Shown here one piece after another: positions 1,561 through 64,000 of a stretch of 64,000 bases of DNA. Under the pieces are notes generated by a model. It worked only from the letters and a program-made list of their open reading frames with translations, ran no database searches and was not told where the DNA came from. The number at the start of each line of letters is the position of its first letter. Position 1 is the first letter of the stretch. A program made the translations under genes and the position numbers. The DNA is from Bugula neritina (lineage: Eukaryota > Animalia > Bryozoa), in the NCBI GenBank assembly GCA_964035545.1, contig OZ037766.1, forward strand, positions 12,266,722-12,330,721, written 5' to 3'.

Positions 1561-3469
1561 TAGATACTTTATTGTGAACATATGAGATGCAATAATAAGC
1601 GAATATTTGACCATTTGGCACTTCATATACATTTGGCACTTCAAAGTGTAGGCCTATCATGTGTTCATAAAACATAGTATGTGAAAAGCTCTTATTGGAA
1701 ATCTTAAAAATGCAAATATAGTACATAAAACTTTTGTATGAGGTAATTATCTTTAGACCTTAATAGATTATAGGTTATAGATGCCACTGAAGACATTTTT
1801 TTACAAAGAACTTTATAGATCATAGAATAAAAGAATAAAGATAGTATATAATCAAAACCTAGGATAGATTTTCACCAATAAGTAAAACAGCTAAATATCA
1901 TGTTTTGTAAGTCACAAGTGTCTTTTAATAGATAATAGCAAACATATATAAGAAAGCTTGAATATCAAAATTTTGCAGTTTTTCAATTAATATTATTATA
2001 GCTTTAATATTTTTAAATTCGAATCAGCTTATAATTTGCACATTACTATGTTATGCAATTTGAATACAATTTTACAGATAGGATGACACACAGTGGTTCC
2101 TGCAACTTTGTAGCATATATAAATTGTTATGCAATAAGTTTCTCTCTTAGCTCTGCTATTTGTTACTGAACTAGCTCCTGCATCTGAAACTAAAAACAAT
2201 TAGCACTAATTGAAATAGCAAAATGATGAGCAATAAGAAATAGCTACTGGTTGTGCAAATAAATGGCCAGAGGGGCTTCTAATTCCGAAAAGTACAGATA
2301 ATTACCAAAAACTCAAAAAGACCAAAACGTTTTTTCTTGTTGCAATTATGTTTGATTTTTTGAATTACAATGAAAAACTATGACTAAGTAAGTTACCTAA
2401 ATCTTTTGCTGCCATCACAATCATCCATTTATAGCCATTGGTGCACTCATTCTGCACACGTTTAGGAAGGAAACTGACATCCTGTACGAACTCATCAAAT
2501 ACTTTAACATCTACTTCTGCGTCTTCCTCATCCAGTTCCTGGTCATCGAAGTTTTCCAGGAACTCCGACACCACATCTTCGTTGTTGGTTTCACTGAAAG
2601 CAACAGGACTAATATAGCAGCTCTGATTACACGGAGACCCTAAACAGGTTGTATGCATAAATTTCACAGAACTATATACAGTCAATGTATAACATAGAGA
2701 GAAACTGCAATAGTCTACGCACCCATACTAAATCATAATTCGAAGCCTACGTTTATAGTCAACATCAAAGTCGACTTGCATAAATTGAAAAAAATATGTT
2801 AAAGCAAAACAACTATTCATTGATATAATCTAAACAAGTATGATCATATAAGATAAATTATGTAAAATTTATATATGTGTACAGATTTACATATAATGCA
2901 AGCTTATTTCATTTAGTGGATAGCCTATAAGCTACTTCCACTCAGAAATATTCTTATCTTCATACAAGATATACAAGCTGTAACAGACACATATCTACTA
3001 ACACTTTGCGCTATATGTACTATATAACAGACAAGATATTGCATACTATTCAACATATGTATGAGCTGTATCAACTGCCATTTACCTTTTGAAACAATTC
3101 AGCATGAAAAGTACCATCAGCTCGGTGGTAATATGCCACGTGTTCATCTTTGTTCAGCATAACTTGATCCTTCACCTATATTATTTTAAAGCTTTAGCAC
3201 CATTTTCAACATTTTAATATGATATGAAAATGTTAAAAACAATATACCTAAGAATACATGTACAATTAGAATTAAAAAAAATAATATGTATTTATTATTT
3301 GGTAGCCTTTTATCATATATTATCTGATTTTATTTATTACTTCTTTTTCATTTTAAACGCATTTAGTCTAGAAGTAACCAATTCAATGATTTTTCACTCA
3401 TTACGCTCTGAAGGGTGGTCACACAATTTTGTAGAAATTCAGAGTTTTAAGGGTCTTAATTAATCTGTG

Positions 3470-3780
3470 AAAACTCTAGACTGTTCTGTGCACCCAACTG
3501 GCCACAAAAGCTCCTCAAACTTTTGAAATGAATGAAGAGTTGTCTCCTCCTAATTTTTGTCTAAACCAGTTAAATATCCTGGAATTATTAAAACTACTTT
3601 TGTTTATATATATGAAAAAAAATTGCAGATGGCCATAGATGCATTTTTAAGTTTTATTGTACAGACTCTTGACTGTTTTGTCTACCCAGTTAATCACAAA
3701 AGCTCTTCAAACTTTCGAATAAGTTGTTTTTCCCTAATTTTGTATAAATCGGTTAAATATCTTGAAATTATTCAACCTAA
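3470..3780. repeat. Degenerate tandem duplication, ~190-bp period
   Basis: ACTCTAGACTGTTCTGT...CACAAAAGCTCCTCAAACTTT...CCTAATTTT...AAATATC.TG.AATTATT at ~3473 is repeated at ~3665. Confidence 0.65.
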
Positions 3781-4268
3781 AGATTCTAAATATTGTAACT
3801 AATTTTACCAAAAAAAGTAATAAGGAGCATGAACAGGTTAGTCTAGACTCTAGACTCTAGAGGATATTTTAGGTTTGTACAATTGGGCTTTACCAACAAA
3901 TTTAAATATAACTATATATTGTATAAGCAATGTTTTTAAAATGTTGGTTAAAATGCATAATTTTTATGCTATTTTAACGGTGACTTCTGAGTCAAAATTT
4001 AATTAGTTCAGTTATATTTATGAAGGAAATGCCCTAAAGCTTTGCTATAATTGAAAAAATATCATTTTATAATTATGTTTAATTAGCCACCCATTATAGA
4101 AAAAGATCTGGTGGTGTCTTATTCAAAGATCATGGGCAAGTAAGCTTCTTTTATGTGTGTCATGTGTCACAAAAGACAATAATTTCTTACTAGAAAACTA
4201 GGACAAGCTGTTCTAGAATCTAGACTAATTGAACAAATCAGAAAAACTAACATGCAGGTATCATCCTA

Positions 4269-4575
4269 ACCCCTCATTCACACTTACCGTACCGTAGGCT
4301 GTAACAGCAAAATATCAGCCGGTTTTACAAATTTCTGAGCTTCCTTTACGGCGTTGCGGTACATTAGGATCAAGCACTGCTTGATTCAAAAATGCTGCAG
4401 CGGACTTTCATTGGACAGAAAAACTTGTATGTTAACTCATTGGATATAATTATCTAATGAAGTGTCATAGATCGTACCTAATAGCAGACTTTGAAAACTT
4501 CAGCTCGAACACATTACAAATGGCTGATATTTTATGTTACGACCTACGGCATAATGGTAAGTGTGAATGAGAGGT
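4269..4575. mobile_element. MITE with long imperfect TIRs (PIF/Harbinger-like)
   Basis: CTCATTCACACTTACC...CCGTAGG...AAAATATCAGCC at the left end is mirrored by GGCTGATATTTT...CCTACGG...GGTAAGTGTGAATGAG at the right end. Superfamily assignment is tentative. Confidence 0.7.
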
Positions 4576-4899
4576 CAGTCTGAGCAGGTTAGTTATCACA
4601 GACCTAACACATTTAAGCTAAGGGTTACATAGGCATGTGTTGCCATTATAAAAATATCTCTATCCAATTTTAGGCAACATTTTTGCTATCATATCAGAAA
4701 GTATGAAAGAAGCTTAAATGATAGCTATGAAAATAGGAGTCCAAAAAAAATTTCCTCGCCAAATGCATATAAGCATTGTTATAAGTAGTTGACTTATGAT
4801 AAAAATAACTCACAAAATCATGATAACCGCTTCTAATTCCAATAAAATCGCTTTGTACGATTTTAGAGTCCAGTTCTGGTAGGCTCATAACACTTACTT

Positions 4900-6180
4900 A
4901 AAATGTTAAACCTAACCTTGTTGAACTTAATCTTATGAACCTATATGCGCTCCCATGAATTCTATTAAAAAAGAATTGACTGCAGACTGCTATGCTTCAC
5001 ACATTCTCCTGCATGCCTAAAATGTGCTATTATCTTTGATGAAATCGCAAAACTTCAAAAAGTGAAAGCTGTTCCTATACATTTGATATGCATGCTGATA
5101 CATTCCTTACAGAAATAATTGTAACGGCCCATTCCTAATATTCATGCAAAAGAGACTTTTTCTGTAACTTATCTATAGAAACCAGTTTAAGAATATGAAG
5201 AGATCAAGGCATGCTATGATATGTGGTCATGGAACAGCTGTTGTTGGTTCAAATCAATTATTTCTAGCCAGCTTTTGCAATTTCTTGGCAATTAGCAACA
5301 AGAAAAATTATAGTGCATTTTTGTGAAAAACATTGGGCGAAAAAGGCGATAGAGAAATATTTTCATAGCTATTGGGTTCAAGGAAAACTGCATTTAGCTC
5401 AAATTTTCAAAACATGGCAGAGTTCATAAGAAAATGAAAGTATAGTGTGACGAGACACAAGCCTATAAGCATGATCTTACATGCAAAATATGTCCTGAAG
5501 AATGTTCTCTCAATCAAATGTATAATAATAAAGTCACAATATTTGCAATATCTTACCATTTGAAAATGAATGTTCATTCATAGAACATGATATGGTCACA
5601 TGAGATATTTAGATACCAATTTTGCTGCAAATGAACATGGATATGAGTTGTGTGCAACACTCCCTGGCTTTCATACTCTAGCAGGTTATGATTTCATTAG
5701 CACTTGTATAAAAAAGGAAAGTGCACATTCTACTCCTACCTGAGAAAAACATTCAGAATGTGCTGAAAGCTGTTGTACAGCTTGGAAAGTACTTCAAGCC
5801 ACAACTGCAATAATCTAAATAAAAGGACCTTTGCAAATAAGCATAGATGAAGTTTGATGCGCTGTATTCTGTTTTTCTACACCGATGGCTCAATTAGCAG
5901 GTTTCCCCACAACAAAATGAACTTATGCTGCACACAAAATATTTATCAGACAGCCACTTAAAGAAGGGTAACAAATATTCGATTCCAGAATATTTTGGGT
6001 GAAAATTGTTGAGAATGGCAGCATCACTATAAAATGACTAACTCAAATGTGCCCAAAAATGCATTGAAAAAAACATATCATAATGCTGCTGTAAAACCAA
6101 TACATTCTGATGCGAATGTCAGAATTATCAAATGCAGTGCACTGGTGTATGTCAATGCAAGGATTGTTTAAACAGAAGAT
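4900..6180 (+). mobile_element. Decayed Academ-like DNA transposon fragment (XPG/PIN-like + Cys-rich C-terminus)
   Basis: Frameshifted remnants: TLPGFHTLAGYDFIST..KKGK (~5657-5725), PQQNELMLHTK..YQTA (~5907-5957), PEYFG* (~5985), and CCCKT...CECQ..QMQCTGVCQCKDCLN (~6084-6172). Order and content match the XPG + Cys-finger end of Academ-type proteins as recalled; boundaries approximate. Confidence 0.55.
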
Positions 6181-7946
6181 CCTTTGGAGAAAAATACGAA
6201 AATGGAATTAATAGCAGTAATAATAATGGTAACAAAACTTTATACAATGAAGCTCTACTTTGAAACATTTGTTATATAATTTTCTTCAAACAACAAATTT
6301 TACATTATATGCTTTAATAATTAATCATCCCCATATTCTTGTGATTTTATAATACATTTACAGAATCTTGTTCCTATTTTACAGATATTTAGTAATTACA
6401 GCTAGATCAATAAAAGACTCATGTGGTAGGTGCTCAAAAGATCTCAACATGCATCTTTAATATATAGTTTAAACACTTAATTCTTAGATACATCAGCATA
6501 AAAAACTTTCGATCTCACATAACCAGTTTCTTTTATATACTTATTTTGTTATATGCTTCTGCCAAATGTAATGTGCTATTCATATAGCAAACATGTGTCT
6601 CTAGCTGTTGACAGCTTGGTTTTGAATAGAAGGAGTATTTTGCATTTTATATATAAATAAATAAATAATTTTAAAAAAGAAACAACCAATTTTGGTTTCT
6701 CGCCAAATATTGTTGTTTATAGACAGCTAGTTAATATTTTGCATGATCTCCATTCATTTTTATTACCCATTCAAAAAGATGTATGGTTTGCTTTTTGCAA
6801 TAACTTAAGTTTGAGAAAAGATATAATTCCAGAGTTTGTAAATTCAGAATCCTTACAAAATTCTAATCTAGAAATAACTTTTTTTGAGTGGCCACCTAGT
6901 ACAGTGTAATAAGTTAATTTTTTAAAAACTTTTTGGGAGGTTACTTCTAAAGTCTAGATTTATTGAGCTTTTTTCTTTTAAGAGTATTTTATTAAAATGA
7001 TTGTTGCTACTTTCACACTCAAGACCTCTAGCAATGACTGTTGGTGTGTAAGTAGATAGTGCTGACTTATTGTTTATGGATATACAAACCCTGGCCAAAC
7101 ACCTCATAGTAAATTACTTTAAGTCTTTATGCAATAAAATAAATTTATAAAATTACTGCAATACTACTTTAAAAACTATAAAAATGTAGTATCTTCATGA
7201 TGCGTGTGATTTTATATATTACAGAAAAATAATTTTCATGAAAAAATGTATATACAATTCATTTAATTCCTTACACAGCTGCATGAAATAATTCAAATGG
7301 AGATTTTATCTTGAGAGATAATGTGCAGCAAACGATATTTATAGCGTTTATAAATTATTAAAACATCTTAGATAACAAATGCACAAGAGTTTATATATTT
7401 TAAACTCTTTACTCACATGTTGGTTGTCAGGAGTTCTAATGTTAACAGTTGCTTGGACATCTGCACTCACCCTGGTCATCTTCTCAGGCTCTTTGTGCTG
7501 GCAAACTGTATAAGTTTTAGTCAGGCCCATGTAGATAACAGCTGACACAGAAACAACCAACAGAATGGAGATAACCAGCAAGGAGACTCTAAGGAGCTTT
7601 GACTTGTAGCTTTTCTCAACCATTTGTGAACACAAAATTGAATGAATTTCTACTGTACATACCAATTTAACCTAATTATAAGCTGCTACAATGTGTAAAT
7701 CACAATAATATTTTGACTTTAACAATCTATTTTGAAAAAACTTTGCTATAAAATTATTACTTTGTTTAATTTAGTATTTAAAATTTATCAATAGTAACTT
7801 AGTGCAAGTGAAAATTTTGTTGAATGGTTTTTTAATTAAAATTGATATAAGAATATAAGTGTTAGAGAAAGCTTGCCCTAAAGTCTTCGAATGTATGTTT
7901 GTCTGAGGAGCTCATACTAATCTTTATTTTTATATAAGCTGAGAGT

Positions 7947-11247: not shown

Positions 11248-11275
11248 AATCTGAGCTCATAGAATGAAGATTAGT

Positions 11276-13668
11276 ATGAACTCCTCAGACAAACAGACAT
11301 TCGAAGACGTTAAAGCAAGCTTTATTTTTATAATTAAATAATCATCAAATAAAATTTTCATTTAATTACTACCAATTATTTTTAATTACTAATTCAAACA
11401 AAGAAATAATTTTTAGCAAAGCTTTTTTAAGCTAAATTATTCAGGCTAAACTTTTAAATTGCAGTTTACAAAATGTGGCAACTTTTGATTAGGTTGAATT
11501 AAAACTTCCCTCAATTTTGTGTTCACAGATGATTGACAAAAGTGACAAGTCAAAGCTGCTGGGAGTCTCTTTACTGGTTATCTCCATTCTGTTGGTTGTT
11601 TCTGTGTCAGCCGTTATCTACATGGGCCTGAATAAAACTCATGCAGTTTGCCAGCAGAAAGAGCCTGAGAAGATGACCAGAGTGAGCGCGGATGTCCAAG
11701 CAACTGTTAACATTAATACGCCTGACAACCAACATGTGAGTAAAGAGTTTAAAATATATAAACTCTTGTGCATTTGTTATCTAAGAATTTTAAGACATCT
11801 TGATATATCGAAAATGCTATATAAATATTGTTTGCAGCACATTATTTTTCAACTTGAAATTTTTATTTGAATTATTTCAACTAATGTCAGTACATCCACA
11901 TGCAGCTGTAAGTAAAACATGTATATATCATATCCATTTGCTACCTAAAATATTTTGGCAAGTTAAAAGCACCAAAAAATCGTTCAGCTTAAATTATTCC
12001 ACAACTTGAAGTCCAATTTTGTTATACAATATAGCTGAACTAAGAGTATTTCAACTCATGCTAGTATAACTATTTTTCATGATTAAGTTATTTGTTTTGT
12101 AATATGAAACCACACACATGTTTTAAGATATTACACTTTTTTTAACTTTTGAAATGATATTGCAGTGTTTTATATTTGTTTTCTCGCATAAAGATTTGAG
12201 TGATTTGCTGTAAATATTTAGCAAAAATTTTGTAAATATAAGTTGCGAGTATGACTGTTGGTACACATACTATACGATTGATGTTACAGGCTTTGAGTAT
12301 AAAATTAGTAGCCATCATTTGAATTAATATTGCCAAAAGAAAACAGTTAGTAAATATTTAGTTAAAAATTGAAGTTCTACAATCCATGAAATCAGGTATA
12401 ATAATGGTACTGAAATGTAAAAATTTTGGTTTTTGATTTTAATTATACATGTATTATGCGGGAGGTTGCTACTAAAATTTTCATATATAATAAAAATATT
12501 AGAAATGAGACTAATGGTTTAAAAAACTTTGTGTATAATATAGGTGAAGGATCAAGTTATGCTGAACAAAGATGAACACGTGGCATACTACCACCGAGCT
12601 GATGGTACTTTTCATGCTGAATTGTTTCAAAAGGTAAATGGCAGTTGATACAGCTCATACATAATATGGTGTGGTGATTATAGTATGCAATATCTTGCCT
12701 GTTATGTATACAAGTGTAAGTAGATATGTGTCTGGTGCAGCTTGTATATCTTGTACGAACATTTCTGAGTGAAAGTAGCTATAGTGCTATTCTCTAAATA
12801 AAATAAAAGCTTGCATCATACATAAATTTGTACACATATATAAATTCTATATATAATAGGCTATATGTGCTTATGTTTGCTTAGATTATGTCAATGCATA
12901 GTTTTTTGTTTTAAAATCTTTTTGAGCATATGTATGCAAGTCGGATTGGAATTGTGGTATAATATAACCATGCAAAGTATTGTAGTTTCCCTATATGTTA
13001 TATATATTTATATGGTCGGCTATGTATGCATGGTTCTGTGAAATTTATGCATACAACCTGTTTAGGGTCTCCGTGTAATCAGAGCTGATAAAGGCATCTG
13101 CTATATTAGTCCTGTTGCTTTTAATGAAACCAACAATGAAGATGTGGTGTCGGAGTTCCTGGACAACTTCGATGACCAGGAACTGGATGAGGAAGACGCA
13201 GAAGTAGATGTTAAAGTACTCGATGAGTTTGTGCAGGATGTCAGTTTTCTTCCTAAACGTGTGCAGAATGAGTGCACCAATGGGTATAAATGGATGATTG
13301 TGATGCCAACAGGAGATTCTGGTAACTATCTTGTTTAGTTACACTTTCTGTTACAGCTCACCAAAAGTCAAGCATATATTTTGCAGCGAGGTTGAAAGTT
13401 TTAGTCCCTTTTGACTCTTTAGTATAATAACTTGTATTTTTCCACACACAAGTTAAATAATCTATATTTACTTTTTATTTTAATTACTGCTAAATGTAGA
13501 AAAAAAATTTTTTTAATAAGATTGCTTTTTGTTCCAGATGCAGCTGTTACTTCAGCTACCCATGGAAGAGTTAAACGCCGAGTCAGTTGCTACAATCGCT
13601 ACTACTGCTACATCATTTTCAGGAGAGCTTATTGTTATGTACGCCGTATATGTACTATTAGAGGATAA
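11276..13668 (+). CDS. BRICHOS-domain precursor of a cationic beta-hairpin antimicrobial-type peptide, paralog B (intact, ~240 aa)
   Basis: Exons 11276-11314 (MNSSDKQTFEDVK, GC donor; in-frame upstream ATG at 11264), 11529-11735 (hydrophobic LLGVSLLVISILLVVSVSAVIYMGL), 12544-12633 (VKDQVMLNKDEHVAYYHRADGTFHAELFQK), 13066-13321 (GLRVIRADKGICYISP...FLPKRVQNECTNGYKWM), 13538-13668 (DAAVTSATHG-RVKR-RVSCYNRYYCYIIFRRAYCYVRRICTIRG*). Phases 0,0,0,1 join without stops; introns 2-4 are GT-AG. CYI and C-x5-W motifs match the BRICHOS cysteine pair (pattern recognition, no HMM run). Confidence 0.85.
13579..13665 (+). other. Predicted mature peptide B, 29 aa, C-x5-C-x8-C-x5-C, 7 Arg, C-terminal Gly
   Basis: Follows the RVKR furin consensus and ends at the stop; no acidic residues; symmetric Cys spacing fits a two-disulfide beta-hairpin. 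Confidence 0.75.
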
Positions 13669-15048
13669 GCCAAAAGTCTTTTAATATTGCTTAAGATTGC
13701 TGTGAGTTCATATGAAATTATGATTTGTGTTTAAAAGTATGGCAAGCTACAAAATTATGATTAGAACTTTCTCTATTTTGAACTTCAGCTTTGTTATAGT
13801 GTGCTTTATCTATTGCAAAAAAAGCATTATGATATTTTCCTGTTTTGCTTATTGGTGAAAATTTAGCCTTATGTTGACTGTACCATTTTTATGCATTTTA
13901 TTTAATAATAAAGTTTTCAAAAAATAACCATAAATAATGGCATCTTTGATATGATTCATTAAAGTAGTCGAAAAAGAATATTTCTCTTACAACATTTTGA
14001 ATTTTCTTTTTAAAAGTTTCTAATAAAATTACTTTTTTCTATCCTGATGGCCTTTATGAATTCATAAATATACTGCATTAGCTATAAAATAGCATTTGGG
14101 ATTTTGAACCTGAGTTCCCAAGTATAAACTTATAATTAATAAACTGGTTTACACATCACCCCCAACAACATTCACCTGCATACTTTAACTGTCACATTTA
14201 CTCATAGAATATCCCTATTTATGATGAAGTGGAATTGTTAGATTATAAGTTGTGGCTGTTTTGATTTATGTACATTGTGTTTACATTGGGTATGTGGCTA
14301 TCTGAATATAAATGACGTGGTGTCATTCCTACCCAACCTCTACTATTTTTCTACTCTAGGGCTATGTAGTGAATGGCTTAAAGCACTATAATAGTAATTT
14401 GAACAACATTTTAGAGTATTTATCTATTTTGCCTAACACAGTCATGCAAAGGATTGAAATTGTCACACTTTGTTACTACATAACTTAGCTGGCCACATCG
14501 AATGTTCCCACTGAACAATAACTCCTTTGATACCAGTTCTTAATTAATTATATTTTGGAAAAATGTAACAGCAATAACTAATAAGTAACTACTTCAGATT
14601 AACTAAACAAGTTCAACTAACGGAGAACACATTACTACTTGTACAAAATTATTATATAACTATGAAATAACTAGCAAAACAATATAAAATGAAAATTGGT
14701 TATAAAAAACTAGATAACTAGAAAGCAACACAAATTAACTGACTCTGTTACTTTTTTGCTAACATATTTTTTGTGCCTGTAAATGTGATAAATGTTATTA
14801 TGTTATTAAGTTATTATGCAGTTTATAGTAATATATTAAACTTTTCACCAGTTTTACTATAATCTTTCGAGTTACACATACACAAATTATTAACTCAATT
14901 ACGATTATTACTTAATTGCATTATTGTTGTTATTTTGTTATTACAGTCTACTATAAATAATATTATGCTATGTCTCTACGCAGCATAAATTATACTCTGC
15001 AAAAAATCTTAAGCTGGCTTAGAGAAGGTCAACTCTACACCCAATTTT

Positions 15049-17936: not shown

Positions 17937-20900
17937 TTACACACAAATGCGATATATATAACAATAAATTTCTTCGTCAAAAGGATAGCATCGATAGTAA
18001 TAGTAATAGGAACAAATAACTTGGCGTTTGGCTCTTCCATGTGAAGCTAAAGTGACATCTGCATCTGAAATAAAAACAACTATAGTAACAAATTTTCTTT
18101 TAGATTTAGCTGTGTAATTAAAAAAACCTAATAAATTATATATATCATTTTTGTTTGTTTTTGTGCTTTGCTAATCAGAAAAATCCATCATTAGAAGAGT
18201 GTCAAAAGTATGAAACCAATTTTCATTGTAAGTATGTTTAACTTTTGTGAACTGTAACAGAAAGCTCTAGCTAAGCAAGATAGTTACCAGAATCTCCTGT
18301 TGACATCACAATCATCCATTTATAGCCATTGGTGCACTCATTCTGCACACGTTTAGGAAGGAAACTGACATCCTGCACAAACTCATCGAGTACTTTAACA
18401 TCTACTTCTGCGTCTTCCTCCTCTATTTCCTGGTCACCAAAGTTGTCCAGAAACTCCGACACCACATCTTCGTTGTTGGTTTCATTGAAAGCAACAGGAC
18501 TAATATAGCAGATGCCTTTATCAGCTCTGATTACACGGAGACCCTAAATAATTTGTATATGCATAAATTTCACAGAACCATGCATATACAGCCGACCATA
18601 TAAATATATATAACATATAGTGAAACTACAATACTTTGCATGGTCGTATTATGCCACAATTCTAATCCGACTTGCATACATATGCTCAAAAAGATTTTAA
18701 AGCAAAAAACTATGCATTGACATAATCTAAGCAAACATAAGCACATATACTATATTATGGTAAATTTATATATGTTTACAAATTTATGTATGATGCAAGC
18801 TTTTATTTTATTTATAGAATAGCACTAGCTACTTTCACTCAGAAATATTCGTACATGATACACAAGCTGTAACAGACACATATCTACTTACACTTGTATA
18901 CATAACAGGCAAGATGTTGCATACTATTCACCACACCATATTATATATGAGCTGTATCAACTGCCATTTACCTTTTGAAACAATTCAGCATGAAAAGTAC
19001 CATCAGCTCGGTGGTAGTATGCCACGTGTTCATCTTTGTTCAGCATAACCTGATCCTTCACCTATATTATACACAAAGTCTTGTTAACCATTAGCCCCAT
19101 TTCTAATATTTTTATTATACATAAACTTTTAAAAATAACATTGCTATAAATTCATATGATATGATATGAAAATGTTAAAAACAATATACCTATACATTTC
19201 TAATATTTTTAATATATTATATGAAAATTTTAGTAGCAACCTCCCACATAATACATGTATAATTAAAATAAAACACCTTAAAATTTTTACATTTCCGTAC
19301 CAATATTATACCTGATTTCATAGATTGTAGAATCTCAACTTTCAACTAAATATTTACTAACTTTTTCTTTTGGCAACATTACTTCAAATAATGGCTACTA
19401 ATTTTATACTCAAAGCCTGTAACATCAATCTATTAGTATGTTTACCAACAGTCATACTGGCAACTTATATATAGATATACAGAATTTTTGCTAAATATTT
19501 ACAGCAAATCACTCAAATCTTTATGCAAGAAATCGAATATAAAACACTGCAATATCATTTCAAAAGTTAAAAAAGTGTAATATCTTAAAACATGTGTGTG
19601 GTTTTATATTACAAAACAAATAACTTAATCATAAAAAATAGTTATACTGGCATGAGTTGAAATACTCTTAATTCAGCTATATTGTATAATGAAATTAGAT
19701 TTCAAGTTGTGGAATAATTTAAGCTGAACGATTTTTTGGTGCTTTTAACTTGCTAAAACATTTTAGGTAGCAAATGGACATGATCATATACATGTTTTAC
19801 TTACAGCTGCATGTGGATGTACTGGCATTAGTTAAAATAAGTCAAATAAAAATTTCAGGTTGAAAAATAATGTGCTGCAAACAATGTTTATATACATGTA
19901 GCATTTTCGATTTATCAAAATATCTTTAAATTCTTAGATAACAAATGCACAAGAGTTTATATATTTTAAACTCTTTACTCACATGTTGGTTGTCAGGAGT
20001 TCTAATGTTAACAGTTGCTTGGATATCTGCACTCACTCTGGTCGTCTTCTCAGGTTCTTTGTGCTGGCAAACTGCATGAGTTTTAGTCAGGCCCATGTAG
20101 ATAACAGCTGACACAGAAACAACCAACAGAATGGAGATAACCAGCAAGGAGACTCCTAGCAGCTTTGACTTGTCGCTTTTCTCAACCATCTGTGTAAAGT
20201 CATCACATATGACATAGCATAATTATTTCAAGTTGTAAAAGCAGCATAACGTAATGAATGTACTACAGTTTATATACCAGGTTGTCAGCATTTTAAACTG
20301 TTGAGAACCTGGTTGTGGTGTGAAGATACCATTATTACTGCAGTCTATATGCAGTACAGAGTGTAATCTATTTATGGTACAACCAACTTCCACAATTATT
20401 TCATAGCATACCTTTCCACTCAAATAGGCTATCCGCATCGCTTGATTCCTGCCTACAGCCTACGCAACGACTGCTAGTTGTCAATTCATTAATTAGATAA
20501 CAGCACGCCCTCGCCCATTGGCTGTGGCTTTACGCTTTGGCAGCCCGGATGTTCAGTGCAGACGTTGAACCTACAGCTAGTAGAATAGTAGGCGCTAGCA
20601 ATGCAAGTTCCATCGCATCAATAACAATCAATTTTAATGATATAATTAACAAAATATAATTGAATTTGAATTTGAATTAACTTAAAGAGGCTCAGGTTAG
20701 TTTTGTTTTTCAGTATTTGTAATAGTTTGAAGCTTTCCTTAAGTATTTTTTGATCTATTTCAACTTAATAATAAATATTTGGTTTATTTAACATGTTTAG
20801 AAGTTTAACAAGTTTGGAATGCCAGTGTGGTCAGTGCATGATAGAATTCATGGCTATGTGTTTACTCTATAGTAATATATTTCTCATAAAATTACAAATT

Positions 20901-28621: not shown

Positions 28622-29153
28622 CTAAAAATGTGAATAAAATAAAATTACATGACACACATGAAGTTGGCAGCACCAGATGCAGTAGGAGTATTCAGATCAA
28701 AAGAGCAAGCTGTTAGACAATTAAAATGGTAAACATGGCAACTTTGGGAGCAAATTTAAAAAAAGTCACACATAGCTTTTTATATCAGTTAAGCAAGCAT
28801 ACATTTTTACAATGAAGAACATCTGCACTACATTACATGAACACCCGGGATAGCTGCAATCTACAATACACTGTAATTACAACATGCAAGATGCAACTCA
28901 TAAAATCAATAATCGAGACATGCAACTAAACAAGAGAATGCTGGGGATTTCAGCCTAACCTTTTTGCTGCAAATATTGTACATGCGTTGAGAGCACATCT
29001 ACCAACTACAAACCACAAAAGCTACAACAATGGGTTGAAAAAAAGAAACTGAAAAAGGCAAGCGGCGACAAACAAAAATGTCTCAAGCCAAAAGCAACTA
29101 CAGCCTCACAAGCCAACTAACAATTAGACCAGCCACAACATTGACAAAAGTAC

Positions 29154-32100
29154 CTTCAGAATTATGACTTCCAGTAGATGATGCTGGAGATTGACAACGG
29201 CTACTTCTTTGAGTGCGTTTAGCTTCTCTTTCAGCTTCAACATCTGCCATGGTGAAAACTTTTTGACGTGGTTCATATCGATAATCAGACTCATAAAACT
29301 CCTTTAGTCTAGTCGAATGACTAGAGCGGCTTGATGTAGTTGATCGTGTTTCATTATCACTATCCCCATTGTCTTTACTCAGTGCAAATGGGTTTGATGT
29401 TGATGGATAACTTTGGTGAAATGACATGCTCATAGAATCTTGATCTTTTTCTTTTTCGACAACTGCATTGGTATCAAATTCAGTAAAATCTGTGGCTGAC
29501 ACATTATCAGCATTAGAAGAATCATGGAGAGTAAGTGAGTCGGTACTGACCGTCATCGGATCAGATGACTTGGGCATCACTAAGGAGTCAGAAGATTCCG
29601 TCATCAAAGTTTCATCAGCAGTTTCAGATGACACTGAATCAACCATTACCTGATATGAAGACTCCGTCATTGGATCTACAGGAGACTCCTGCAGATAGGG
29701 CTTGTGAATTGCTTCACTGCTAAGTGAATCTATTGATTTTTCCATTACGGAAGGCCGCTCACCACCAATTGAATCAATAGACTTGACCATGACTTCATCT
29801 TGTGTATCACCTTGCAGTGAATTGTTGGAAGTTGAAGCAAATAAATCTTGCTCTCCAATATTACCTAATGAGTCGTTGGATTTGGTCATACATTCACCCT
29901 TGTCTTGTTTCTCATCAACAAGACTATCTGTTGATGTTTCCATTTCTTCACACACTGCCAGGTCCTGTGTAACAACTGGTTCATTCATCAGAATGCACAT
30001 TTTCTCTGGCTTCACTATTTTCTCGTCAGATAGATTTACTTTGTTGTCACTAGGTGAACAGCCATTGTTAGTTGTTGAATCTAGCTTATCAAGTTGATTT
30101 AATGGTTTATCTGCTTCTAGCTGATTGATGCTAGTGTCACGACCCTCATGAGGCTTATCACAATTAAATTCATCTAGTGTACTTGCTAAAGCTACATCCT
30201 CAAAGTTGTGAGTTAAGGCAGAATTAGCTGGAGCTGATGAAGCAACAGGGGAATTGCAACTCAAATTTTCTTGTTTAGCTTCATCTAATTGCGGTTCATA
30301 ACTACTTGACTTAGCATTTAGTTCTTCTAGGTGTTTCACAACTTTGTTTGCCTCCCGTTGAACTTCTTCTGACTCAGCATCCATTTCAAGTGATTCAAAC
30401 TCAAATAATGAACTATTAGAGTTAGCTTTTCTTGAACAATCTAAAATTTTGTAAGTATGCAACTGAGAATGATTATCATTGTCTACAATAGCAGCTTCCA
30501 AATGTTCAAACTCTAGCACTGAAGAGCTAATAGATTCTTGATCTCGGTCAATGGCTTTCCTGACTAGCCGATCACCATAAATTGAAGATCTTGGTGAATC
30601 TTTATTATGTGCAACATGACTTTCCAATTGCTCAAACTCAGCTAAAGATGAAGAGACAGATATGGCATCTGCATCGCGGATGTTTGAAAATTTTTGAATG
30701 ACTACAATTTCCGATGATGGCGTACTCACAGCTGATCTCTGGGGGCTATCAATCCGAGGAGTTGTGGGTTCTTGAACTAAAGCAGATTGCGAGTCGGTTA
30801 ATGGCAATGAGATTATTGGTAATTCAGGACCACTAATGCATGTAACATCAGACGTTATAGATGAAGTCATAGAGGCAATCTCATGAAGTCGATCCTCTGA
30901 CTCTTCAACTAATCCACCAGGGGCTATAACAGTATTATAGCTATCAACACTAGATATATCAGCATCGTCGTCAAAGCTGTTATCTTCAAAAGAGTCAATG
31001 GCAGAAGCCTGTTGAGACTGATCAACATAAGAGTTTTGAGGACTATTATTGGAACACATTTCTTCAAGGATTGTATCTACAAATCCTCGATTATCTTCTT
31101 GCTCAGAACTAATAGAACCTTCACTTTCAGATAACTCTTCAACTGCTGACAGCTGCCGATGCTGGTACAAAGAAGGTTCTTCTACATCAAGGATGGTCAC
31201 TTCATCCAACTCCGAAGAATCCTCGGTTAACAAGTTGTCATAAATACTGTTACTAGAACCAGAGTTACTACCCTCAGCAGGTGGAGACACTTCTTGACGA
31301 TAAAACTTGATGGAATCTGAAATGGCTTGAGAAACAATTTGAGAAACTAGATTGCTTTCATTCAGTTCATTTGTGCCATGACTAGAAGTAAAGTCTGTAG
31401 TAGCCTCAAAACTAACACTTCCAGGCACGTTGAAATTGTTTTCTTCAGAAGAAATATTTGTACTGAGGTCTTCATGAACTGGGTCAACACTGCTTGTTGT
31501 GCATGCTGTATCATTACTAGCTGGAGTGTTACCATCATTAGTAAACCTTACTGAAAGCTCCATTTCATCAATGGGACTTTTATCTAGCTCACTTGGATCA
31601 TATGTGAAAGGTTTTAAAGCTGTTGAACTTGCAGGTACATTGAAATCGTTTTCTTCAGAAGGAGTATTTGTACCGAGGTCTCCATGAAGTAGGTCAACAC
31701 TGCTTGTTGTGCGTGCAGTATTCTCACTGGCTGGAGCATTACCACCATCAGTAAACCTTACTGAAAGGCCTGCTTTATCAATTGGACTTATATCTAGTTC
31801 ACTTGGATCATATGTGATAGAAGGGTTTGAAGCTGTTGAACTTGCAGGTACGTTGAAATCGTTTTCTTCAGATGAAATATTCGTACCAAGGCCTTCATGA
31901 ACTGGGTCAATACTGCTTGTTGTGTGTGCAGAATTTTCACTGGCTGGAGCATTACCATCATCAGTAAACCTTACTGAAAGGCTTGCTTTATCAATGGGAC
32001 TTTTATCTAGTTCACTTGGATCATATGTGAAAGAAGGTTTTGGAGCTGTTGAAATATGACCTAGACCAAAATCAATTATGCTAGACAGTGGATCAACTGT

Positions 32101-33941
32101 TGATGGCAGGTGCACTGTTTCTACCCTACTAACTTCACTACTGGCATCGCCAATATTCTGAGAAAAGCTGTCAGAAAATACTTCATCTGAAACACTAGTT
32201 GAAGCAGTAGGCACAGAACTATCGCTAGAATCATGTGTGCTCTTACTGCTTGGCAATATGTCAGTCAACTCTCCAGTTTCCAAGACATAGCACGCGCCTA
32301 TCACACTAGTTTCTGCTGAAGAACATGGAGTTTCATTCAACTCATCCGTAACCGTTTTTGAACTTACGAAGGATGTTTCCAAAACATCACCAGCATCATC
32401 ACTTTCTACATCTGAAAAACTTAGCCTGCGTTCTCCTTCGGAAGAGATACCGGAAAAGCCCCCAAAAGACAATCGACCATGTGCTGAATTAAAACTAGGG
32501 CACAAAGTGGCATCACTAGGTGGTAACCCTGCAGCTTGTTTTACATCTGATGAAATATCCTTTTCAGAATTACACAGCGTATCACAGCCACCACCACAAT
32601 CTTTAGCATCTTCACCAGAACTTCCAAAATCATACGAGGTGCCACTATCTGTCATTATTTGTGGAGATGGAAAAATATCCTGTTTTTCAGTTATACTAGA
32701 ATCTTCTCCGGATGAAAGCTCTTGATCTGATAACATGACTTTGTCAGATGCAGTTTCTGCATCTAAATTAGCAGCACCTAATGACTCCTTTTCTCCACAA
32801 GTCAGCAAAGGATCAGCTGAAGGTGCTGAAATTTCGGCCTGCTTAGCAACAATGCCATCTGTAGAACTACTTCTTGATTGGGAAATGCTTTCTCCAACTT
32901 TAAACACTTCGTTTGAATTAGAATGTTGCTCCTCGTTTGATGCAAGTTCAAAATCTTCGTTTGCGGCTTGAGAGTGTATACTCATCAATGCATCATTAAC
33001 TAGACTTCTAGCTAGTTCATAGATGCTGTTGTCGGCGCTGGTAGGAGATTCAACAGGTAATCTATCTTCTTTAGAAGATATAGCTGCAGAAGAATTATCA
33101 TCAGGTAATAATATATCTCCATCAGCTTCAGAATTGCTTTCTATAGAACTTGAACACTCTAAGTGATGAGCCTTTTCATTTTTGTGTGAGATATCTTCAG
33201 ATGAGGACATCCCATCTGCTACCATACTACGACTAAAATCTTCTGAACCTGGCAAGTCACCCAAATCTTCTAACGGCTTTAGTTTTTCTGCATCGTGAGT
33301 ACTGTCCTCAGTACAATCATCAGTTTGCATGTCCTCATTTTCTTTGTCCGGCAAGAAAGTATTATCCTTAGCTAGACTGGACTCACCACTAACTTGATCA
33401 TCAGATAAAAATGAATCAATTTTTTCAGCAGCACGCAAATTTTCATAAAGTTGATCTAGTGAACTGTTTTTGTCATCAGAAAGAGTAGGTGTGAGTGATT
33501 TATCATCTTGGCTTAAATCCAAAAGCTCACTATGCTTTCCAAGTGATGGATTATCGACATCACCCTCTAATTTACCAGATTGTTCATTTTCTAACGAGCC
33601 TTGCACTTTATCCATTAGTTTTCCAATATAATTGTCAGCTTGATCATCAATAATGTTGAAATCTGGAATTTCTGAATCTTTGTCAACATCCTCAATTGAA
33701 TATATTGTTGATGGCCTAGATAAGTCATCGTATGAGCGATAGGTCTGTGCTGAGTCGGAGCTATTGCTAGTAGTTTTAGGTAATTTTCCAATACAAGCTC
33801 CTTGGACATCACAAACTGTTTTAGGAACTATTAAATCATGGTCAATGACGTCATGTTCGTTCGGACTAGCAGACAAAGTGTGATCACCAGAGGAGCTCAG
33901 CAATGTGCCACCACCAACCTCACAAGCATCAACACCAATAC
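29154..33941 (-). CDS. 4788-nt exon of the giant gene; acidic Ser-rich region with UNC-44L-like SSLxEFExLE and MxxSxDSL repeats
   Basis: Within ORF 29098..33996; acceptor atgcag|GT at 33941, donor GAAG|gtactt at 29154; length divisible by 3. Confidence 0.85.
31420..32045 (-). repeat. Three tandem ~70-aa coding repeats (FTYDPSELDKSPID..LSVRFT.DGN.PAS)
   Basis: Period ~210-213 nt inside the 4.8-kb exon. Confidence 0.85.
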
Positions 33942-34476
33942 CTGCATAGGTGAAAATATCCATCAATTTCCAGATAAAGAAACTAGTGAAACACAAATTG
34001 CAAAAAAATAAGATGGCTTCAGCATCAACCGCTAAAACTTATTTTACCCCAAATTATTGCAAAAAACTAAAGATTCTATCAACCACATGAGAATAAACTT
34101 GAGAATTACACCTTTTTAGACAGGTTTTCACCAATTTAAAACTCGCTTAATTTTTTCAATTGCTGATAACACAGAGTTCACAGTTATCAAGTTTTGTCAG
34201 TATTGCAAAGGTCAAAATTTAATTAAATTATTTAATTTGGGAATATATACACTATACAAAAATGGTCTGTAGATTTCCAGATTAAAACTTTACCAAGACC
34301 TAAACGAGGCAATTGTAATTTTTAAGAACAGAAATCAAACAACATAACCTTGATAATAATTTATAAAAACAAAAATGAATTATATTATACAATATTTAAT
34401 TCACATTAGCTTGATTGCATTACTTGATCTACCACATTGACTATCAACTGTCACAGGATCACAACAAAAAAATTAC

Positions 34477-35634: not shown

Positions 35635-36023
35635 CTGTGTATAAAACAATACCCTTTTTCTTACAACTGACTCAAGATAATGTAGATTAATAGCTTAAAA
35701 TAAAAAACATAATGGACATACATATAACAACATCTATTGCAAAACATCTATTGCAAGATTAGTGTATTAAATATAACAGTAGGGAAGCAGAATACGGTTA
35801 AGGTTTGGAGGAGTAACTCAATGCAGTCATTAGAAAGGGAAACTCTGTGCAAATAATTGATCATGCTGGACAAAATTTTCCAAGCTGCTGTAATAATATG
35901 ATAAAACACAAGTTGAATGGGGGAAACAGATGGCTTATTTAGGTAACTGCTTAAACTATTATTACAAAAGCTTGGAATATGAGAGAGCCAAGGAAGAAGG
36001 AGTATGTTAGTTAAATGAAGTAC

Positions 36024-37046
36024 CTTTAGATACCACAGAGACATCAGCAAGAATTAAGGACTGCTCAACATCCAAACCTTCCACAAACAAGGCACTTTTA
36101 TTCTCAGACATTTGAAAATCAGAGACTTCAGTTACAAAATCATGTGCTACAACTGCTGCAGAAATGTCAGCATCAACCACTTTGGTAACGTCTGCAATAG
36201 TTTCAGATTCAAAAGCATTATCAATTAGAGATGTGACACTATTATCGGATGAAGAGCCTTCTGGCTCATCAGAATGTAAGCTTTGAGCTTCAGAAGAGAC
36301 ATGCACGTCAAGAGATGAGGCGCAGCTGAGTGCTTTGCCTGCAACGGCTCTGAGTGTACTGGGACATTCGACCACGCCTTTTCCTGCTCCAGCAATTGCA
36401 GCCGGTTCTAGCTCAGCTTCAGAGTTTATGGTTTCAGGTTCAGAAGTTGGCAACTCGGTTGGTGAGCGTACATCTAGCGACGCATCTGTCAACACGCTGG
36501 ACACTATGCTTGACGACTCCTTTTCTTCTTCATTGGAATTTTCTTTTGGTCGGCCTTTGGACAGTTCATCTACTGCGCAGTGAATAAATTTGGAAGAATT
36601 GGCCTCATCACGTAAAGCTGCTGCAAAATTATCTGGTTCTAAAAAACCCTCGTAACTTTCTGAGAGTCGCTCATTTGTATATAGAACATCAGTAGTTGCT
36701 TCATCTTTAGGAAATCTCACATGCTTTTCGGAAGATTTCATTTCAGAAACGCATTTTTCATCAAATGATATTGACAGAGCGTCTTCTTCAAGAGCCGTTT
36801 CACAATCTTGGATCTCCTCAAAGCCCTGGATGTATTCTTCGGTACCACTCTCAATGGTGTCTTCAAGCTCGTGCTTTTCTGCCTCAGAAAGTTGACTGAT
36901 GGCACTTATTTCGCTATGAACCGACAGCGACATGGGCTGACTGCTGACATTTGACGCTGACATGGGTGTGCTGTCACTGAGAGTAGAAGTAGTGAGCACT
37001 TCAGCCTCTTCCAGAGTCATTGTCCCATGATTAGTGACAATTGTTT
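36024..37046 (-). CDS. 1023-nt internal exon of the giant gene (Ser/Glu-rich)
   Basis: Covers ORF 36007..37020; acceptor ttctatag|AA at 37046, donor AAAG|gtactt at 36024; phase 1-1. Confidence 0.8.
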
Positions 37047-40562: not shown

Positions 40563-41602
40563 TCATTGCTGCGAAGCACTACTGCTATGCACATCCATAG
40601 CCATTCCCGGGACACTACTTGCAGCTAAATTCTCTTCACCTTCAATACACGTGGTTTGAGATTGAAGAACAGTAATTGTTCTCTCAACTTCTATATCAGC
40701 TGGCAGATCTTTGGTGTGGGAATGTCCAAGGTCATCAATATCACCCGGACTCATTGCAAGAAAATGAGTCGCTGCAGAACTCTCATCAGGCGATTGATCA
40801 GCAGAAACAGCAGGTGGTGATACACTTTGATCAGAAGAGCCAAGAGACAAAAACTTTTTCACCATAGAAGAATTACTTTCTTTGGTAGAAAGGGTGATAT
40901 CACCATCTTCATTCTTGGTTATCAAATTTTTAGCTACCATTCGTTTTCGAATTGTTTTAGTGATTTTTCGCGTAACAACAGTACCATCTGGTAAAACCTC
41001 AATCTTAGTTTCGGTTTCCAATCTAGGGTCATCTGTAGTAATTTCAGTTTCAAAAGTGATGTCATCAGATTTAGACTGGGTGTGAATATCCAAGGTGCAA
41101 GAGTCATTTGAGGTGGAAACATGGCTGTCAATATCGACATCAATGGCCAACTTCTGTTCAGGATTTGAAGTATTTTGGAAATCGACCTCAATCTCAGAAG
41201 GGCTGGGATGAGATGAACTGTAGTGATGAACGTTGTCAGAAGAATCAGAAGATGGACAATTAACATCATCAGAAAGGGGCTCATGGGCTAGATTTATTTT
41301 AATCTGATTATTTTCACAATCAGTAGTATTACGGGTGTAACTGATTAAGCCAACATCAGCCTGAGGCATGGTCCCAGAAAGCTGGCCTAGATGAGAAGTT
41401 GCTCCGGTAGGGCATGGAAATTCAGAAGAGATTGGGACTTTTTCAAAAGTGCCATCTGTACGGAAAAGAAGTTGATCCTCATGAACTTCAGCACGGTAAT
41501 CAGTTGACGCAACTGAAGAATGCAACGAAAACAGTTGAGGTGTTGGCGAGGAAACATGCACCCATTCATCTTCGTGAACTTCAGAGGGCAGCATATGCAC
41601 AT
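40563..41602 (-). CDS. Alternative terminal exon of the giant gene (LIR-like and obscurin-binding-like motifs)
   Basis: Acceptor ttctgtag|AT at 41602 continues the giant exon in frame; EDEWVHV and LPDGTVVTRKITKTIRKR motifs; TGA at 40563; AATAAA signals on the minus strand at ~39942-39960. Confidence 0.75.
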
Positions 41603-62800: not shown

Positions 62801-64000
62801 CTAGCTCTTCAGCAACAGTCTGATCTGGTTCTTCAGAAACTGTCTGGTCGGGCTCTTCAGCAACAGTCTGGACTGGTTCTTCAGCCACAGTCTGGTCTGG
62901 TTCTTCAGAGACAGGTTGGTCCGGTTCTACAGTGACCACAGGCTCACTTTCAACAGCTTCTACAGCTTCAGGTACAAGCTCTTCTTCAGCAGCGACAGAG
63001 TCAGCAGCGTCTCTGATTTCTGCTTTAATGTCGTCAGTTGCAGGTTGTTCAGCATCTGCTTGTTCCCCAGGAACGGGCAGGTCGGCTTCTTTAGCAAGAG
63101 CGGAGACAGATTCCTCAACAACTGGCTGGTCTAGTTCTTCAGCAGCTGTCTGGTCTGGCTCTTCAGAGACATGCTGGTCTAGTTCATCAGTGGGTATCTG
63201 ATCTGGCTCATCAGCAACAGTCAGATCTGGTTCTTCTGAGACAGGCTGGTCCTCTTCAGCAACCGTCTGGTCTGGTTCTTCAGAAACCATCTGGTCTGGT
63301 TCTTCACCAACAGTATAGTCTGGTTCTTCAGCAACAAGCTGCTCTTTTTCAGCAACAGTCTGGTCTGGCTCCCCACCAACAGTCTGGTCTGGCTCTTCAG
63401 CAACAGCCTGGTCTGGTTCTTCAGAGAGAGGTTGGTCCGGTTCAACAGTGACCACAGGCTCACTTTCAACAGCTTCTACAGCTTCAGGTACAAGCTCTTC
63501 TTCAGCAGCGACAGAGTCAGCTACGTCTCCGATTTCTGCTTTAATGTCGTCAGTTGCAGGTTGTTCAGCATCTGCTTGTTCCCCAGGAACGGGCAGGTCG
63601 GCTTCTTCAGCAAGAGCAGAGACTGAATCCTCAACAATTGGCTGGTCCGGTTCTTCAGCAGCTATCTGGTCTGGCTCCTCAGTGGGCGTCGGGTCTGCCT
63701 CATCAGCAACAGTCAGATCTGGTTCTTCTGAGACAGGCTGTTCTTCTTCAGCAACAGTCTGGTCTGGTTCTTCAGAAACCGTCTGGTCTGGCTCTTCAGA
63801 AACCGTCTGGTCGGGCTCTTCAGCAACAGTCTGGTCTGGTTCTTCAGCAACCGTCAGATCTGCTCCCACAGCAACAGTCTGGTCTGGTTCTTCAGCAACA
63901 GTCTGGTTTGATTCTTCACCAATAGTCTGGGTTAGCTCATCAGAGACTAGTTGGTCTGGTGCACCAGTGGGCGTCTGGTTTGCCTCATCAGCAACCATAG
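41810..64000 (-). CDS. Giant exon (>=22.19 kb, >=7,390 codons) of an acidic E/D/P/Q/V/A/T-rich repeat protein; putative giant ankyrin insert
   Basis: Uninterrupted ORF 63998-41796, apparently continuing past the window edge; phase-1 donor TCAG|gtttgt at 41810; built from EEPDQTVA 8-mers. Repeat indels all preserve frame. Confidence 0.85.
46400..52280 (-). repeat. 2112-bp (704-aa) higher-order repeat within the giant exon
   Basis: Shadow ORFs recur at an exact 2112 offset: 46774/48886/50998, 48137/50249, 48521/50633, 49764/51876. Confidence 0.9.
55850..59680 (-). repeat. 1917-bp (639-aa) higher-order repeat within the giant exon
   Basis: Shadow ORFs recur at an exact 1917 offset: 55966/57883, 56681/58598, 57112/59029. 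Confidence 0.9.

Follow-up and report, generated by a model that had tools for sequence, protein, structure and literature searches.

A candidate cationic beta-hairpin peptide encoded by the last exon of a BRICHOS-type precursor gene in a bryozoan

The window analyzed here, a stretch of 64,000 nucleotides from a bugulid bryozoan, contains a gene (gene A) whose BRICHOS-type proprotein is predicted to release a cationic hairpin with two disulfides that is most likely a membrane-active host-defense peptide, a reading that we base on sequence comparisons together with structural models and to which we assign a probability of roughly 0.55. As far as can be judged from sequence, the stretch encoding the peptide is no free open reading frame but closes the last exon of a gene with 4 to 5 exons, and this terminal exon is a real, conserved coding exon that supplies the cargo of a bryozoan precursor of the BRICHOS type. 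The predicted precursor is of a known kind and comes from a phylum, Bryozoa, in which this kind was previously unreported. That the peptide is expressed, cleaved off, paired in its disulfides, amidated, and active against microbes is inferred.

In the working that we propose, the gene A proprotein would be anchored in the membrane of the endoplasmic reticulum by an N-terminal type-II helix, and its luminal BRICHOS-like domain would guard the very beta-prone C-terminal segment against aggregation. A furin-like convertase would cleave after an R-V-K-R motif in the late secretory pathway and thereby free a peptide of 29 residues whose terminal glycine may become a C-terminal amide. This peptide would fold into a ladder-type hairpin that turns at F14-R15 and has two disulfides (C4-C25 and C10-C19). 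One of its faces would be hydrophobic and bear the disulfides, and arginine would alternate with tyrosine on the other. The net charge is about +7 to +8, and the peptide would most likely act as a membrane-active host-defense peptide like the BRICHOS peptides of polychaetes.

Structure of gene A and its terminal exon

Gene A lies on the forward strand and extends from 11264 or 11529, depending on whether a probable mini-exon is counted, to position 13668, with a proprotein of around 245 residues encoded by 4 to 5 exons. The DNA is eukaryotic and AT-rich, with about 30% GC. The probable first coding mini-exon (11264..11314, forward strand) comprises 17 codons from an ATG, is followed by a GC-AG type donor (AAA/GCAAG), and was recognized by conservation: Its open reading frame and the donor motif (AAR/GCAAG) are kept upstream of gene A and its paralogues D and E as well as in GenBank contigs of B. 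neritina, and its product matches the N-termini of the GenBank Bugula neritina models P0036 and P0037. Genes of the bryozoan Watersipora likewise begin with a short upstream start exon.

Exon 1 (69 codons; 11529..11735, forward strand) opens with an ATG that is in frame and immediately follows an AG acceptor (11529) and is predicted to encode a short cytosolic stretch, a long hydrophobic stretch further downstream as the membrane anchor, and the start of a luminal linker; in alignments it matches the anchor of the Watersipora proteins, which is modeled there as a helix (16-51). Exon 2 (30 codons; 12544..12633, forward strand) is delimited by AG/GT borders and would contribute the N-terminal portion of the BRICHOS-like domain, including a conserved D-G-x-F motif. 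Its protein sequence is 100% identical in paralogues B, C, and D, and its intron position is common with Watersipora. The putative core of the BRICHOS-like domain with 2 conserved cysteines is encoded by exon 3 (13066..13321, forward strand), which ends at a phase-1 donor GT at 13322, and all 3 exons are in phase with AG/GT borders. Intron 3 (216 nt, GT..AG; 13322..13537, forward strand) was defined by its splice motifs and runs up to the exon 4 acceptor AG at 13536-37, and the G at 13321 completes an Asp codon, which fits the phase-1 donor. If intron 3 is left unspliced, the frame ends in a stop 6 codons past exon 3, and it is for this reason that the GenBank models of the Bugula homologues end before the cargo exon.

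Exon 4 starts with a short linker (13538..13566, forward strand) that precedes the R-V-K-R motif of a putative furin-type proprotein convertase site (13567..13578, forward strand); an R-x-K-R motif occupies the same place in 5 out of 5 paralogues, and Watersipora has REKR or KVKR. The predicted mature peptide, a cationic Cys4 peptide of 28 residues (13579..13662, forward strand), was delimited by translation, an AlphaFold model, and comparison of cargos and is followed by a C-terminal glycine codon, the possible amide donor, and a TAA stop (13663..13668, forward strand). Since the cut site is part of an R-V-K-R-R run, the N-terminus of the peptide is ambiguous by one residue. An earlier note on this DNA had described the peptide as rich in arginine and tyrosine, free of acidic residues, symmetric in its cysteine spacing, and ending in a glycine before the stop. 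All of this is borne out by the translation of 13579-13668 on the forward strand, which has 7 Arg, 6 Tyr, no Asp or Glu, cysteines at positions 4, 10, 19, and 25 (gaps of 5, 8, and 5 residues, with i+j=29 for both pairs), and a Gly codon directly before TAA; the residue count further gives no Lys. For the oxidized amide, the computed average mass is about 3669.3 Da. Translation of the strand opposite to 13579-13668 gave nothing notable.

Database searches with gene A were made exon by exon, with Watersipora protein P0004 as a stand-in for the full-length fold. Protein collections contained no transcript-derived full-length protein of the precursor. The exon 4 product had no family match in Pfam, and the peptide had no match among PDB sequences up to an E value of 10. 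In a public DNA run, a contig spans positions 13532-13749 with zero differences, but this run may come from the source sample and therefore lends no independent support. It is the single public run found to contain the locus, and its content is DNA because introns are covered, so that the search for runs yielded no RNA evidence.

The BRICHOS-like proregion and the predicted hairpin

We regard the proregion as BRICHOS-like on the basis of convergent evidence in which each single line stays below its significance threshold. Exon 3 alone had Pfam PF04089 as its best match, with an E value of 0.007 and 17 bits compared to a cut-off of 25 bits for a domain that spans exons 2 and 3. Of 20 family members, 7 matched the same model (best E 4.6e-4), which was the sole recurrent family. 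A six-frame scan of the genome for PF04089 returned nothing, the gene A locus included, and is insensitive here because that locus itself was missed; a search of PDB sequences with the family profile gave only noise. For comparison with the BRICHOS fold, in which two helices flank a central sheet, Watersipora P0004 was modeled by AlphaFold on the basis of the family alignment (mean pLDDT 56, core 68-89), and the top PDB match of this model by Foldseek was the BRICHOS domain of proSP-C (2YAD; E 0.12, probability 0.84, TM 0.49 by target). Comparison of the same 2 structures by VIA-align gave a Z score of 4.2 with an rmsd of 3.3 Å over 62 residues. A feature search of the ESM Atlas was headed by tenomodulin, LECT1, and ITM2 clusters (0.92), and the top 3 hits of a shape search were BRICHOS clusters (TM 0.33-0.41).

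BRICHOS proteins share an architecture of a cytosolic N-terminus, a transmembrane segment or signal, a linker, the BRICHOS domain, and a beta-prone C-terminal region, and they conserve two Cys as well as one Asp (PMC10182729). The bryozoan family presents the same plan with the hydrophobic anchor of exon 1, conserved Cys and Asp, and a tail predicted as strands; the two cysteines (both in exon 3) and Asp residues conserved across the family are typical of BRICHOS (PMC10182729). Among the paralogues, the dN/dS of this scaffold ranges from 0.15 to 0.27, which indicates purifying selection.

The peptide was modeled by single-sequence AlphaFold from the 42-residue exon product alone, which resulted in a hairpin with a mean pLDDT of 77 and values of 86-95 along most of its length. 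The hairpin with a turn near F-R-R and the disulfides C4-C25 and C10-C19 that the earlier note had proposed hold up in silico: The predicted strands comprise residues 1-13 and 16-28 with the turn at F14-R15, and their register places C4 opposite C25 and C10 opposite C19. The modeled hairpin is facially amphipathic, with a mean hydropathy of +1.66 and one Arg on the face that bears the cysteines and a mean hydropathy of -1.54 with 5 Arg and 5 Tyr on the other. Its turn residues (F-R) are atypical. Foldseek searches with the peptide model returned generic hairpins alone, at E values above 3.

On the side of processing, the genome encodes P_proprotein (furin-type) and copper type-II monooxygenase domains. 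Because the monooxygenase matches could stem from an amidating enzyme or from dopamine-beta-hydroxylase-like genes alike, amidation continues to be predicted from the terminal glycine. The precursor context of a membrane anchor, a BRICHOS-like proregion, and a conserved R-x-K-R motif fits a released peptide. As in annelid-type BRICHOS antimicrobial peptides, the furin-type site lies directly before a C-terminal, cysteine-containing cationic tail, and a disulfide-stabilized two-stranded sheet is predicted for this tail by AlphaFold. Beta-hairpin antimicrobial peptides as a class have been described to carry charges of +1 to +8 on 11-25 residues, with a pair of cysteines at least 3 residues apart and a preference for Arg over Lys (PMC13001179). 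The assignment to this class in the earlier note agrees with a charge of +7, the cysteine pairs 10/19 and 4/25, and 7 Arg without any Lys, but not with the length of 28 residues (29 with Gly), which is beyond the range of 11-25 (PMC13001179).

A paralogue cluster with diverse cargos

Searching the window and 29 kb upstream by tblastn with the 4 exon products revealed 5 paralogues on the contig whose scaffolds are 90-100% alike and whose four-cysteine cargos are very different. Gene A (11529..13668, forward strand, without the mini-exon) is faced in convergent orientation by gene B (17937..20189, reverse strand), which has the same scaffold with a slightly anionic, Tyr-rich Cys4 cargo. Gene C (2029..7623, reverse strand) again shares the scaffold, but a 13-nt deletion in exon 3 causes a frameshift, and its tail is longer with 5 cysteines. 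Upstream of the window (coordinates relative to it) and both on the reverse strand are gene D (-2412..-4526), with a second copy of the cationic cargo, and gene E (-9112..-11443). The exon layout of gene A recurs in 4 paralogues and in the Watersipora RefSeq genes, and no upstream mini-exon was found within 1.4 kb of genes B and C. More distant family members are located on 4 further contigs (C3, C2, C9, and C6), and no cargo exon was recognized within 1.5 kb downstream of those on C3 and C2.

Beyond this genome, HMMER was run exhaustively with exon 3 and returned 16 relatives, of which the named ones are uncharacterized proteins of the cheilostome bryozoan Watersipora subatra (XP_067942708 and XP_067947259). 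Homologues scored E values of 1e-8 to 5e-6 with exon 3 and of 1e-82 to 1e-30 with the family profile; besides the named bryozoan proteins, the searches returned only metagenomic relatives. A profile search added 3 hypothetical proteins of Bugula neritina (EB796_014394, 015194, and 015195), which are about 90-93% identical to exons 1-3 and end before the cargo exon. With proteins of these two species as its closest named relatives, the gene belongs to a bryozoan host. The Watersipora genes share intron positions with gene A, are arranged in tandem, and encode the cargo in a separate final exon. The homologues of both genera follow one exon plan and tandem order with R/K-x-K-R before a four-cysteine aromatic tail. 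Watersipora cargos are longer (46-56 residues compared to 28) and neutral to strongly anionic, whereas the gene A cargo is cationic. All of these homologues are annotated merely as "uncharacterized" or "hypothetical", and a literature search by the GenBank locus tags of the Bugula homologues retrieved no paper. GenBank contigs of B. neritina are syntenic with the region at 85-92% nucleotide identity. We therefore rejected the idea that both represent the same genome and view our DNA as coming from a bugulid lineage that is close to B. neritina yet separate from it.

The cargos of this family are hypervariable. Among the paralogues, the tails that follow R-x-K-R cannot be aligned apart from this motif, the cysteines, and a middle gap that is constant at 8 residues. 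Along the alignment of genes A and B, nucleotide identity is 92-99% in exons 1-3 as well as in introns 1-2. Beginning with intron 3 it is lower, at 75-80%, and it has its minimum of 0.38-0.46 over the part encoding the mature peptide. The E-type cargo and its GenBank orthologue share every cysteine but have different residues at 10 of 28 positions, and pN is 0.174 in the cargo versus 0.029 in the scaffold, yet positive selection is not proven by these values because dS is raised as well. Of 12 family cargos from the 2 bryozoan genera, only that of genes A and D is strongly cationic (+7). The charges of the remaining 10 range from +3 to -12, all with four cysteines and 11-36% aromatic residues; the value of +3 belongs to the frameshifted gene C, and the others lie between 0 and -12. 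The family is therefore not obviously one of antimicrobial peptides, and its ancestral role may not have been antimicrobial. A C-terminal glycine is also present in one Watersipora subfamily.

The cationic cargo occurs exactly twice in the genome, in gene A and in gene D, which precedes the window by about 4.4 kb, and the 42-residue exon 4 products of both genes are identical. Only 1 of 131 nucleotides differs between the 2 copies of exon 4, a synonymous change (99.2% identity), compared to 50 of 667 (7.5%) in intron 3 and the 3' flank; identity is 90.4% in intron 3, 93.3% in the 3' flank, and 90.8% in exon 1. This deficit of substitutions (Poisson P about 6e-4) argues for constraint on the cargo sequence itself, though part of the identity could come from recent gene conversion of a short tract rather than from selection. 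An assembly duplicate was considered and rejected as the origin of the 2 genes, which are oppositely oriented on the same contig and are 9% apart in exon 1 and 7-10% apart in introns and flanks.

The 10 cargos of lower charge that keep their cysteines and aromatic residues speak for a peptide that, like its neutral or anionic siblings rich in Tyr and Trp, is released as a disulfide hairpin with an extracellular role other than antimicrobial activity, and for which the cationic charge is just one, perhaps recent, variant among many. Such a peptide might be a signaling peptide, a toxin or deterrent directed at predators or competitors, or a component of structures, adhesives, or the cuticle that can be cross-linked. 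In line with this, there is no sign of a tie between the genes of the cluster and immunity, and vertebrate BRICHOS proteins release C-terminal peptides that are not antimicrobial, such as Bri23 without antimicrobial activity (PMC6780910). However, the cargo of genes A and D fits the class of beta-hairpin antimicrobial peptides in its charge, its use of Arg over Lys, and its cysteine ladder, the fast divergence of cargos on a conserved scaffold is the very pattern of annelid BRICHOS antimicrobial peptides (PMC6780910), and there is no positive evidence for any specific alternative; we thus see a non-antimicrobial role as a possibility to be taken seriously but somewhat unlikely. Considerably more speculative, and in our view improbable, is a BRICHOS-cargo system of cheilostomes' own in which the scaffold is homogenized by conversion and fast-diverging Cys4 hairpins switch between strongly cationic and anionic, and in which the neighboring, oppositely charged siblings of the A/D and B/E kinds would co-assemble or neutralize each other instead of acting as independent antimicrobial peptides.

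Other readings question the peptide itself. In a recent array with some pseudogenes, the exon could be intact in a gene that is silent or decaying, or the tail could stay uncleaved, and no free peptide would form. The frameshifting deletion of gene C, the lack of a mini-exon within 1.4 kb of genes B and C, a sole sequencing run of DNA without RNA support, and the relatives' GenBank models that end before the cargo exon would all suit this scenario. It is nonetheless an unlikely one, given that the exons of gene A are all open with canonical splice sites, that the A/D cargo exon is more conserved than its flanks with a synonymous sole change, that the scaffold is under the low dN/dS reported above, and that Watersipora RefSeq models do include the cargo exon. 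An origin by chance, with non-coding, AT-rich DNA in which an open frame happens to resemble a peptide, would be compatible with the fact that an open frame of 43 codons is by itself not rare and with an exon product that matches neither a family model nor a PDB sequence. Yet the peptide frame goes beyond chance because of the phase-matched splice sites, the layout common to paralogues and Watersipora with a homologous exon bearing R-x-K-R and four cysteines in all paralogues and another genus, and the identical second copy in gene D with its substitution deficit, and we consider this reading, already contradicted by conservation, as extremely improbable.

Comparison with known precursors and peptides

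Among the closest known parallels of the host-defense peptide that we propose are the BRICHOS antimicrobial peptides, which have been reported "in polychaetes only" and whose precursors consist of a hydrophobic region, a BRICHOS proregion, and a C-terminal cysteine-rich two-stranded peptide, with cargos that lack mutual homology (PMC6780910). The polychaete Heteromastus filiformis alone has 13 such precursors, each with a dibasic site before the cationic tail, of which 5 are membrane-anchored (PMC10745061). Gene A would follow the same plan of an anchor or signal, BRICHOS, a dibasic or furin-type site, and a cysteine-rich cationic two-stranded peptide (PMC6780910, PMC10745061), with a product predicted to be membrane-anchored like some of those in H. 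filiformis (PMC10745061) and with the same combination of a hypervariable cargo and a conserved proregion. This likeness is one of architecture as published, and it sets a gene from Bryozoa beside those of polychaetes. The bryozoan cargo differs in having no detectable sequence relative, in its 28 residues with cysteine gaps of 5/8/5 and very high tyrosine content, and in sibling genes that carry neutral or anionic cargos. In the literature searched, we found no paper that connects BRICHOS to bryozoans and none on antimicrobial peptides from Bugula.

Arg-rich, aromatic, ladder-type hairpins with two disulfides are also known from tachyplesin, polyphemusin, protegrin, and gomesin, several of which are C-terminally amidated and membrane-active (PMC13001179). 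These peptides of arthropods or mammals differ from the bryozoan candidate in that they are made from unrelated precursors without BRICHOS, comprise 16-18 residues, and have cysteine gaps of the 3/4/3 type. Natural families of beta-hairpin antimicrobial peptides come from 5 phyla according to a 2026 review, and Bryozoa is absent from these (PMC13001179).

Provided that the peptide is produced and has activity, the design of a chaperone plus a hairpin would extend to a second lophotrochozoan phylum, and a class that counts fewer than 30 families would gain a new sequence family that is longer and rich in Tyr and Arg. The peptide would also be a candidate for synthesis from a fouling bryozoan, a host better known for bryostatins of symbiont origin. 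The cluster, in which a uniform scaffold carries charge-switching cargos, could in addition serve as a compact natural system for questions about BRICHOS protection and the diversification of cargo exons.

Among vertebrate BRICHOS proteins, Bri23 (from ITM2B/Bri2) and chondromodulin-I are released by furin. ITM2B/Bri2 and chondromodulin/tenomodulin have the same organization of a type-II anchor, BRICHOS, and a beta-prone C-terminal part as the bryozoan family (PMC10182729), but their released parts differ in that none is a cationic hairpin antimicrobial peptide. Sequence identity between vertebrate and bryozoan proteins is too low for significance in HMMER; by language-model features and shape, chondromodulin, tenomodulin, and ITM2 are the nearest named clusters to the bryozoan family.

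Structure of the gene copies

The five paralogues on this contig (genes A to E) encode a membrane anchor, a BRICHOS-like domain and a Cys-rich cargo behind an R-x-K-R site, and a probable start mini-exon of 17 codons is kept at window 11264-11314 in gene A, before genes D and E, and in the GenBank B. neritina contigs L026 and L027. In all of these copies, it is directly followed by a donor of the GC-AG type (AAR|GCAAG). For genes B and C, the mini-exon was not found in the 1.4 kb upstream.

Genes A and D, which carry the same cargo, are 90.8% identical in exon 1 (anchor and linker; window 11529-11735 in the A copy) and 93.5% identical in the next intron. Judged by these identities, exon 1 is less conserved than the intron adjoining it, the opposite of the usual pattern for coding exons.

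Gene C is probably a pseudogene because its exon 3 (window 2380-2660, minus strand) lacks 13 nt relative to gene A, which shifts the frame within the BRICHOS-like exon, and because it has a first intron of 4.2 kb as well as a longer tail with 5 Cys.

Distant relatives and the published genome

More distant family members with the anchor and BRICHOS-like domain lie at C3:22516676-22523078, C2:29415735, C9:7900522 and C6:11015416, with 31-43% identity to the Watersipora protein P0009 across the four loci. In the 1.5 kb downstream of the C3 and C2 loci, no R-x-K-R site with a Cys tail could be recognised.

L026 and L027 match window -21672 to 17023 at only 85-92% identity over syntenic stretches of 0.7-2.5 kb. 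By this sequence comparison, the assembly scanned here and the published B. neritina genome (GCA_010799875.2) therefore represent different lineages, and the scanned one may be a cryptic species. One GenBank B. neritina copy of the family has an exon 3 interrupted by stop codons.

Large open frames on the minus strand

Three minus-strand open frames without a Pfam family lie at window 29098-33996 (1,632 codons) and, smaller, at 36007-37020 and 40563-41600. A single frame of 7,400 codons, also on the minus strand, occupies window 41796-63998 and extends past the window end; its first 1,000 residues matched no Pfam family. It contains a tandem array of around 790 copies of a 24-nt unit (44905-63930) that encodes an acidic 8-residue repeat in which E, P, D, Q, T, V and A are abundant. 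The frame has 52% GC, compared to around 30% in the surrounding DNA.
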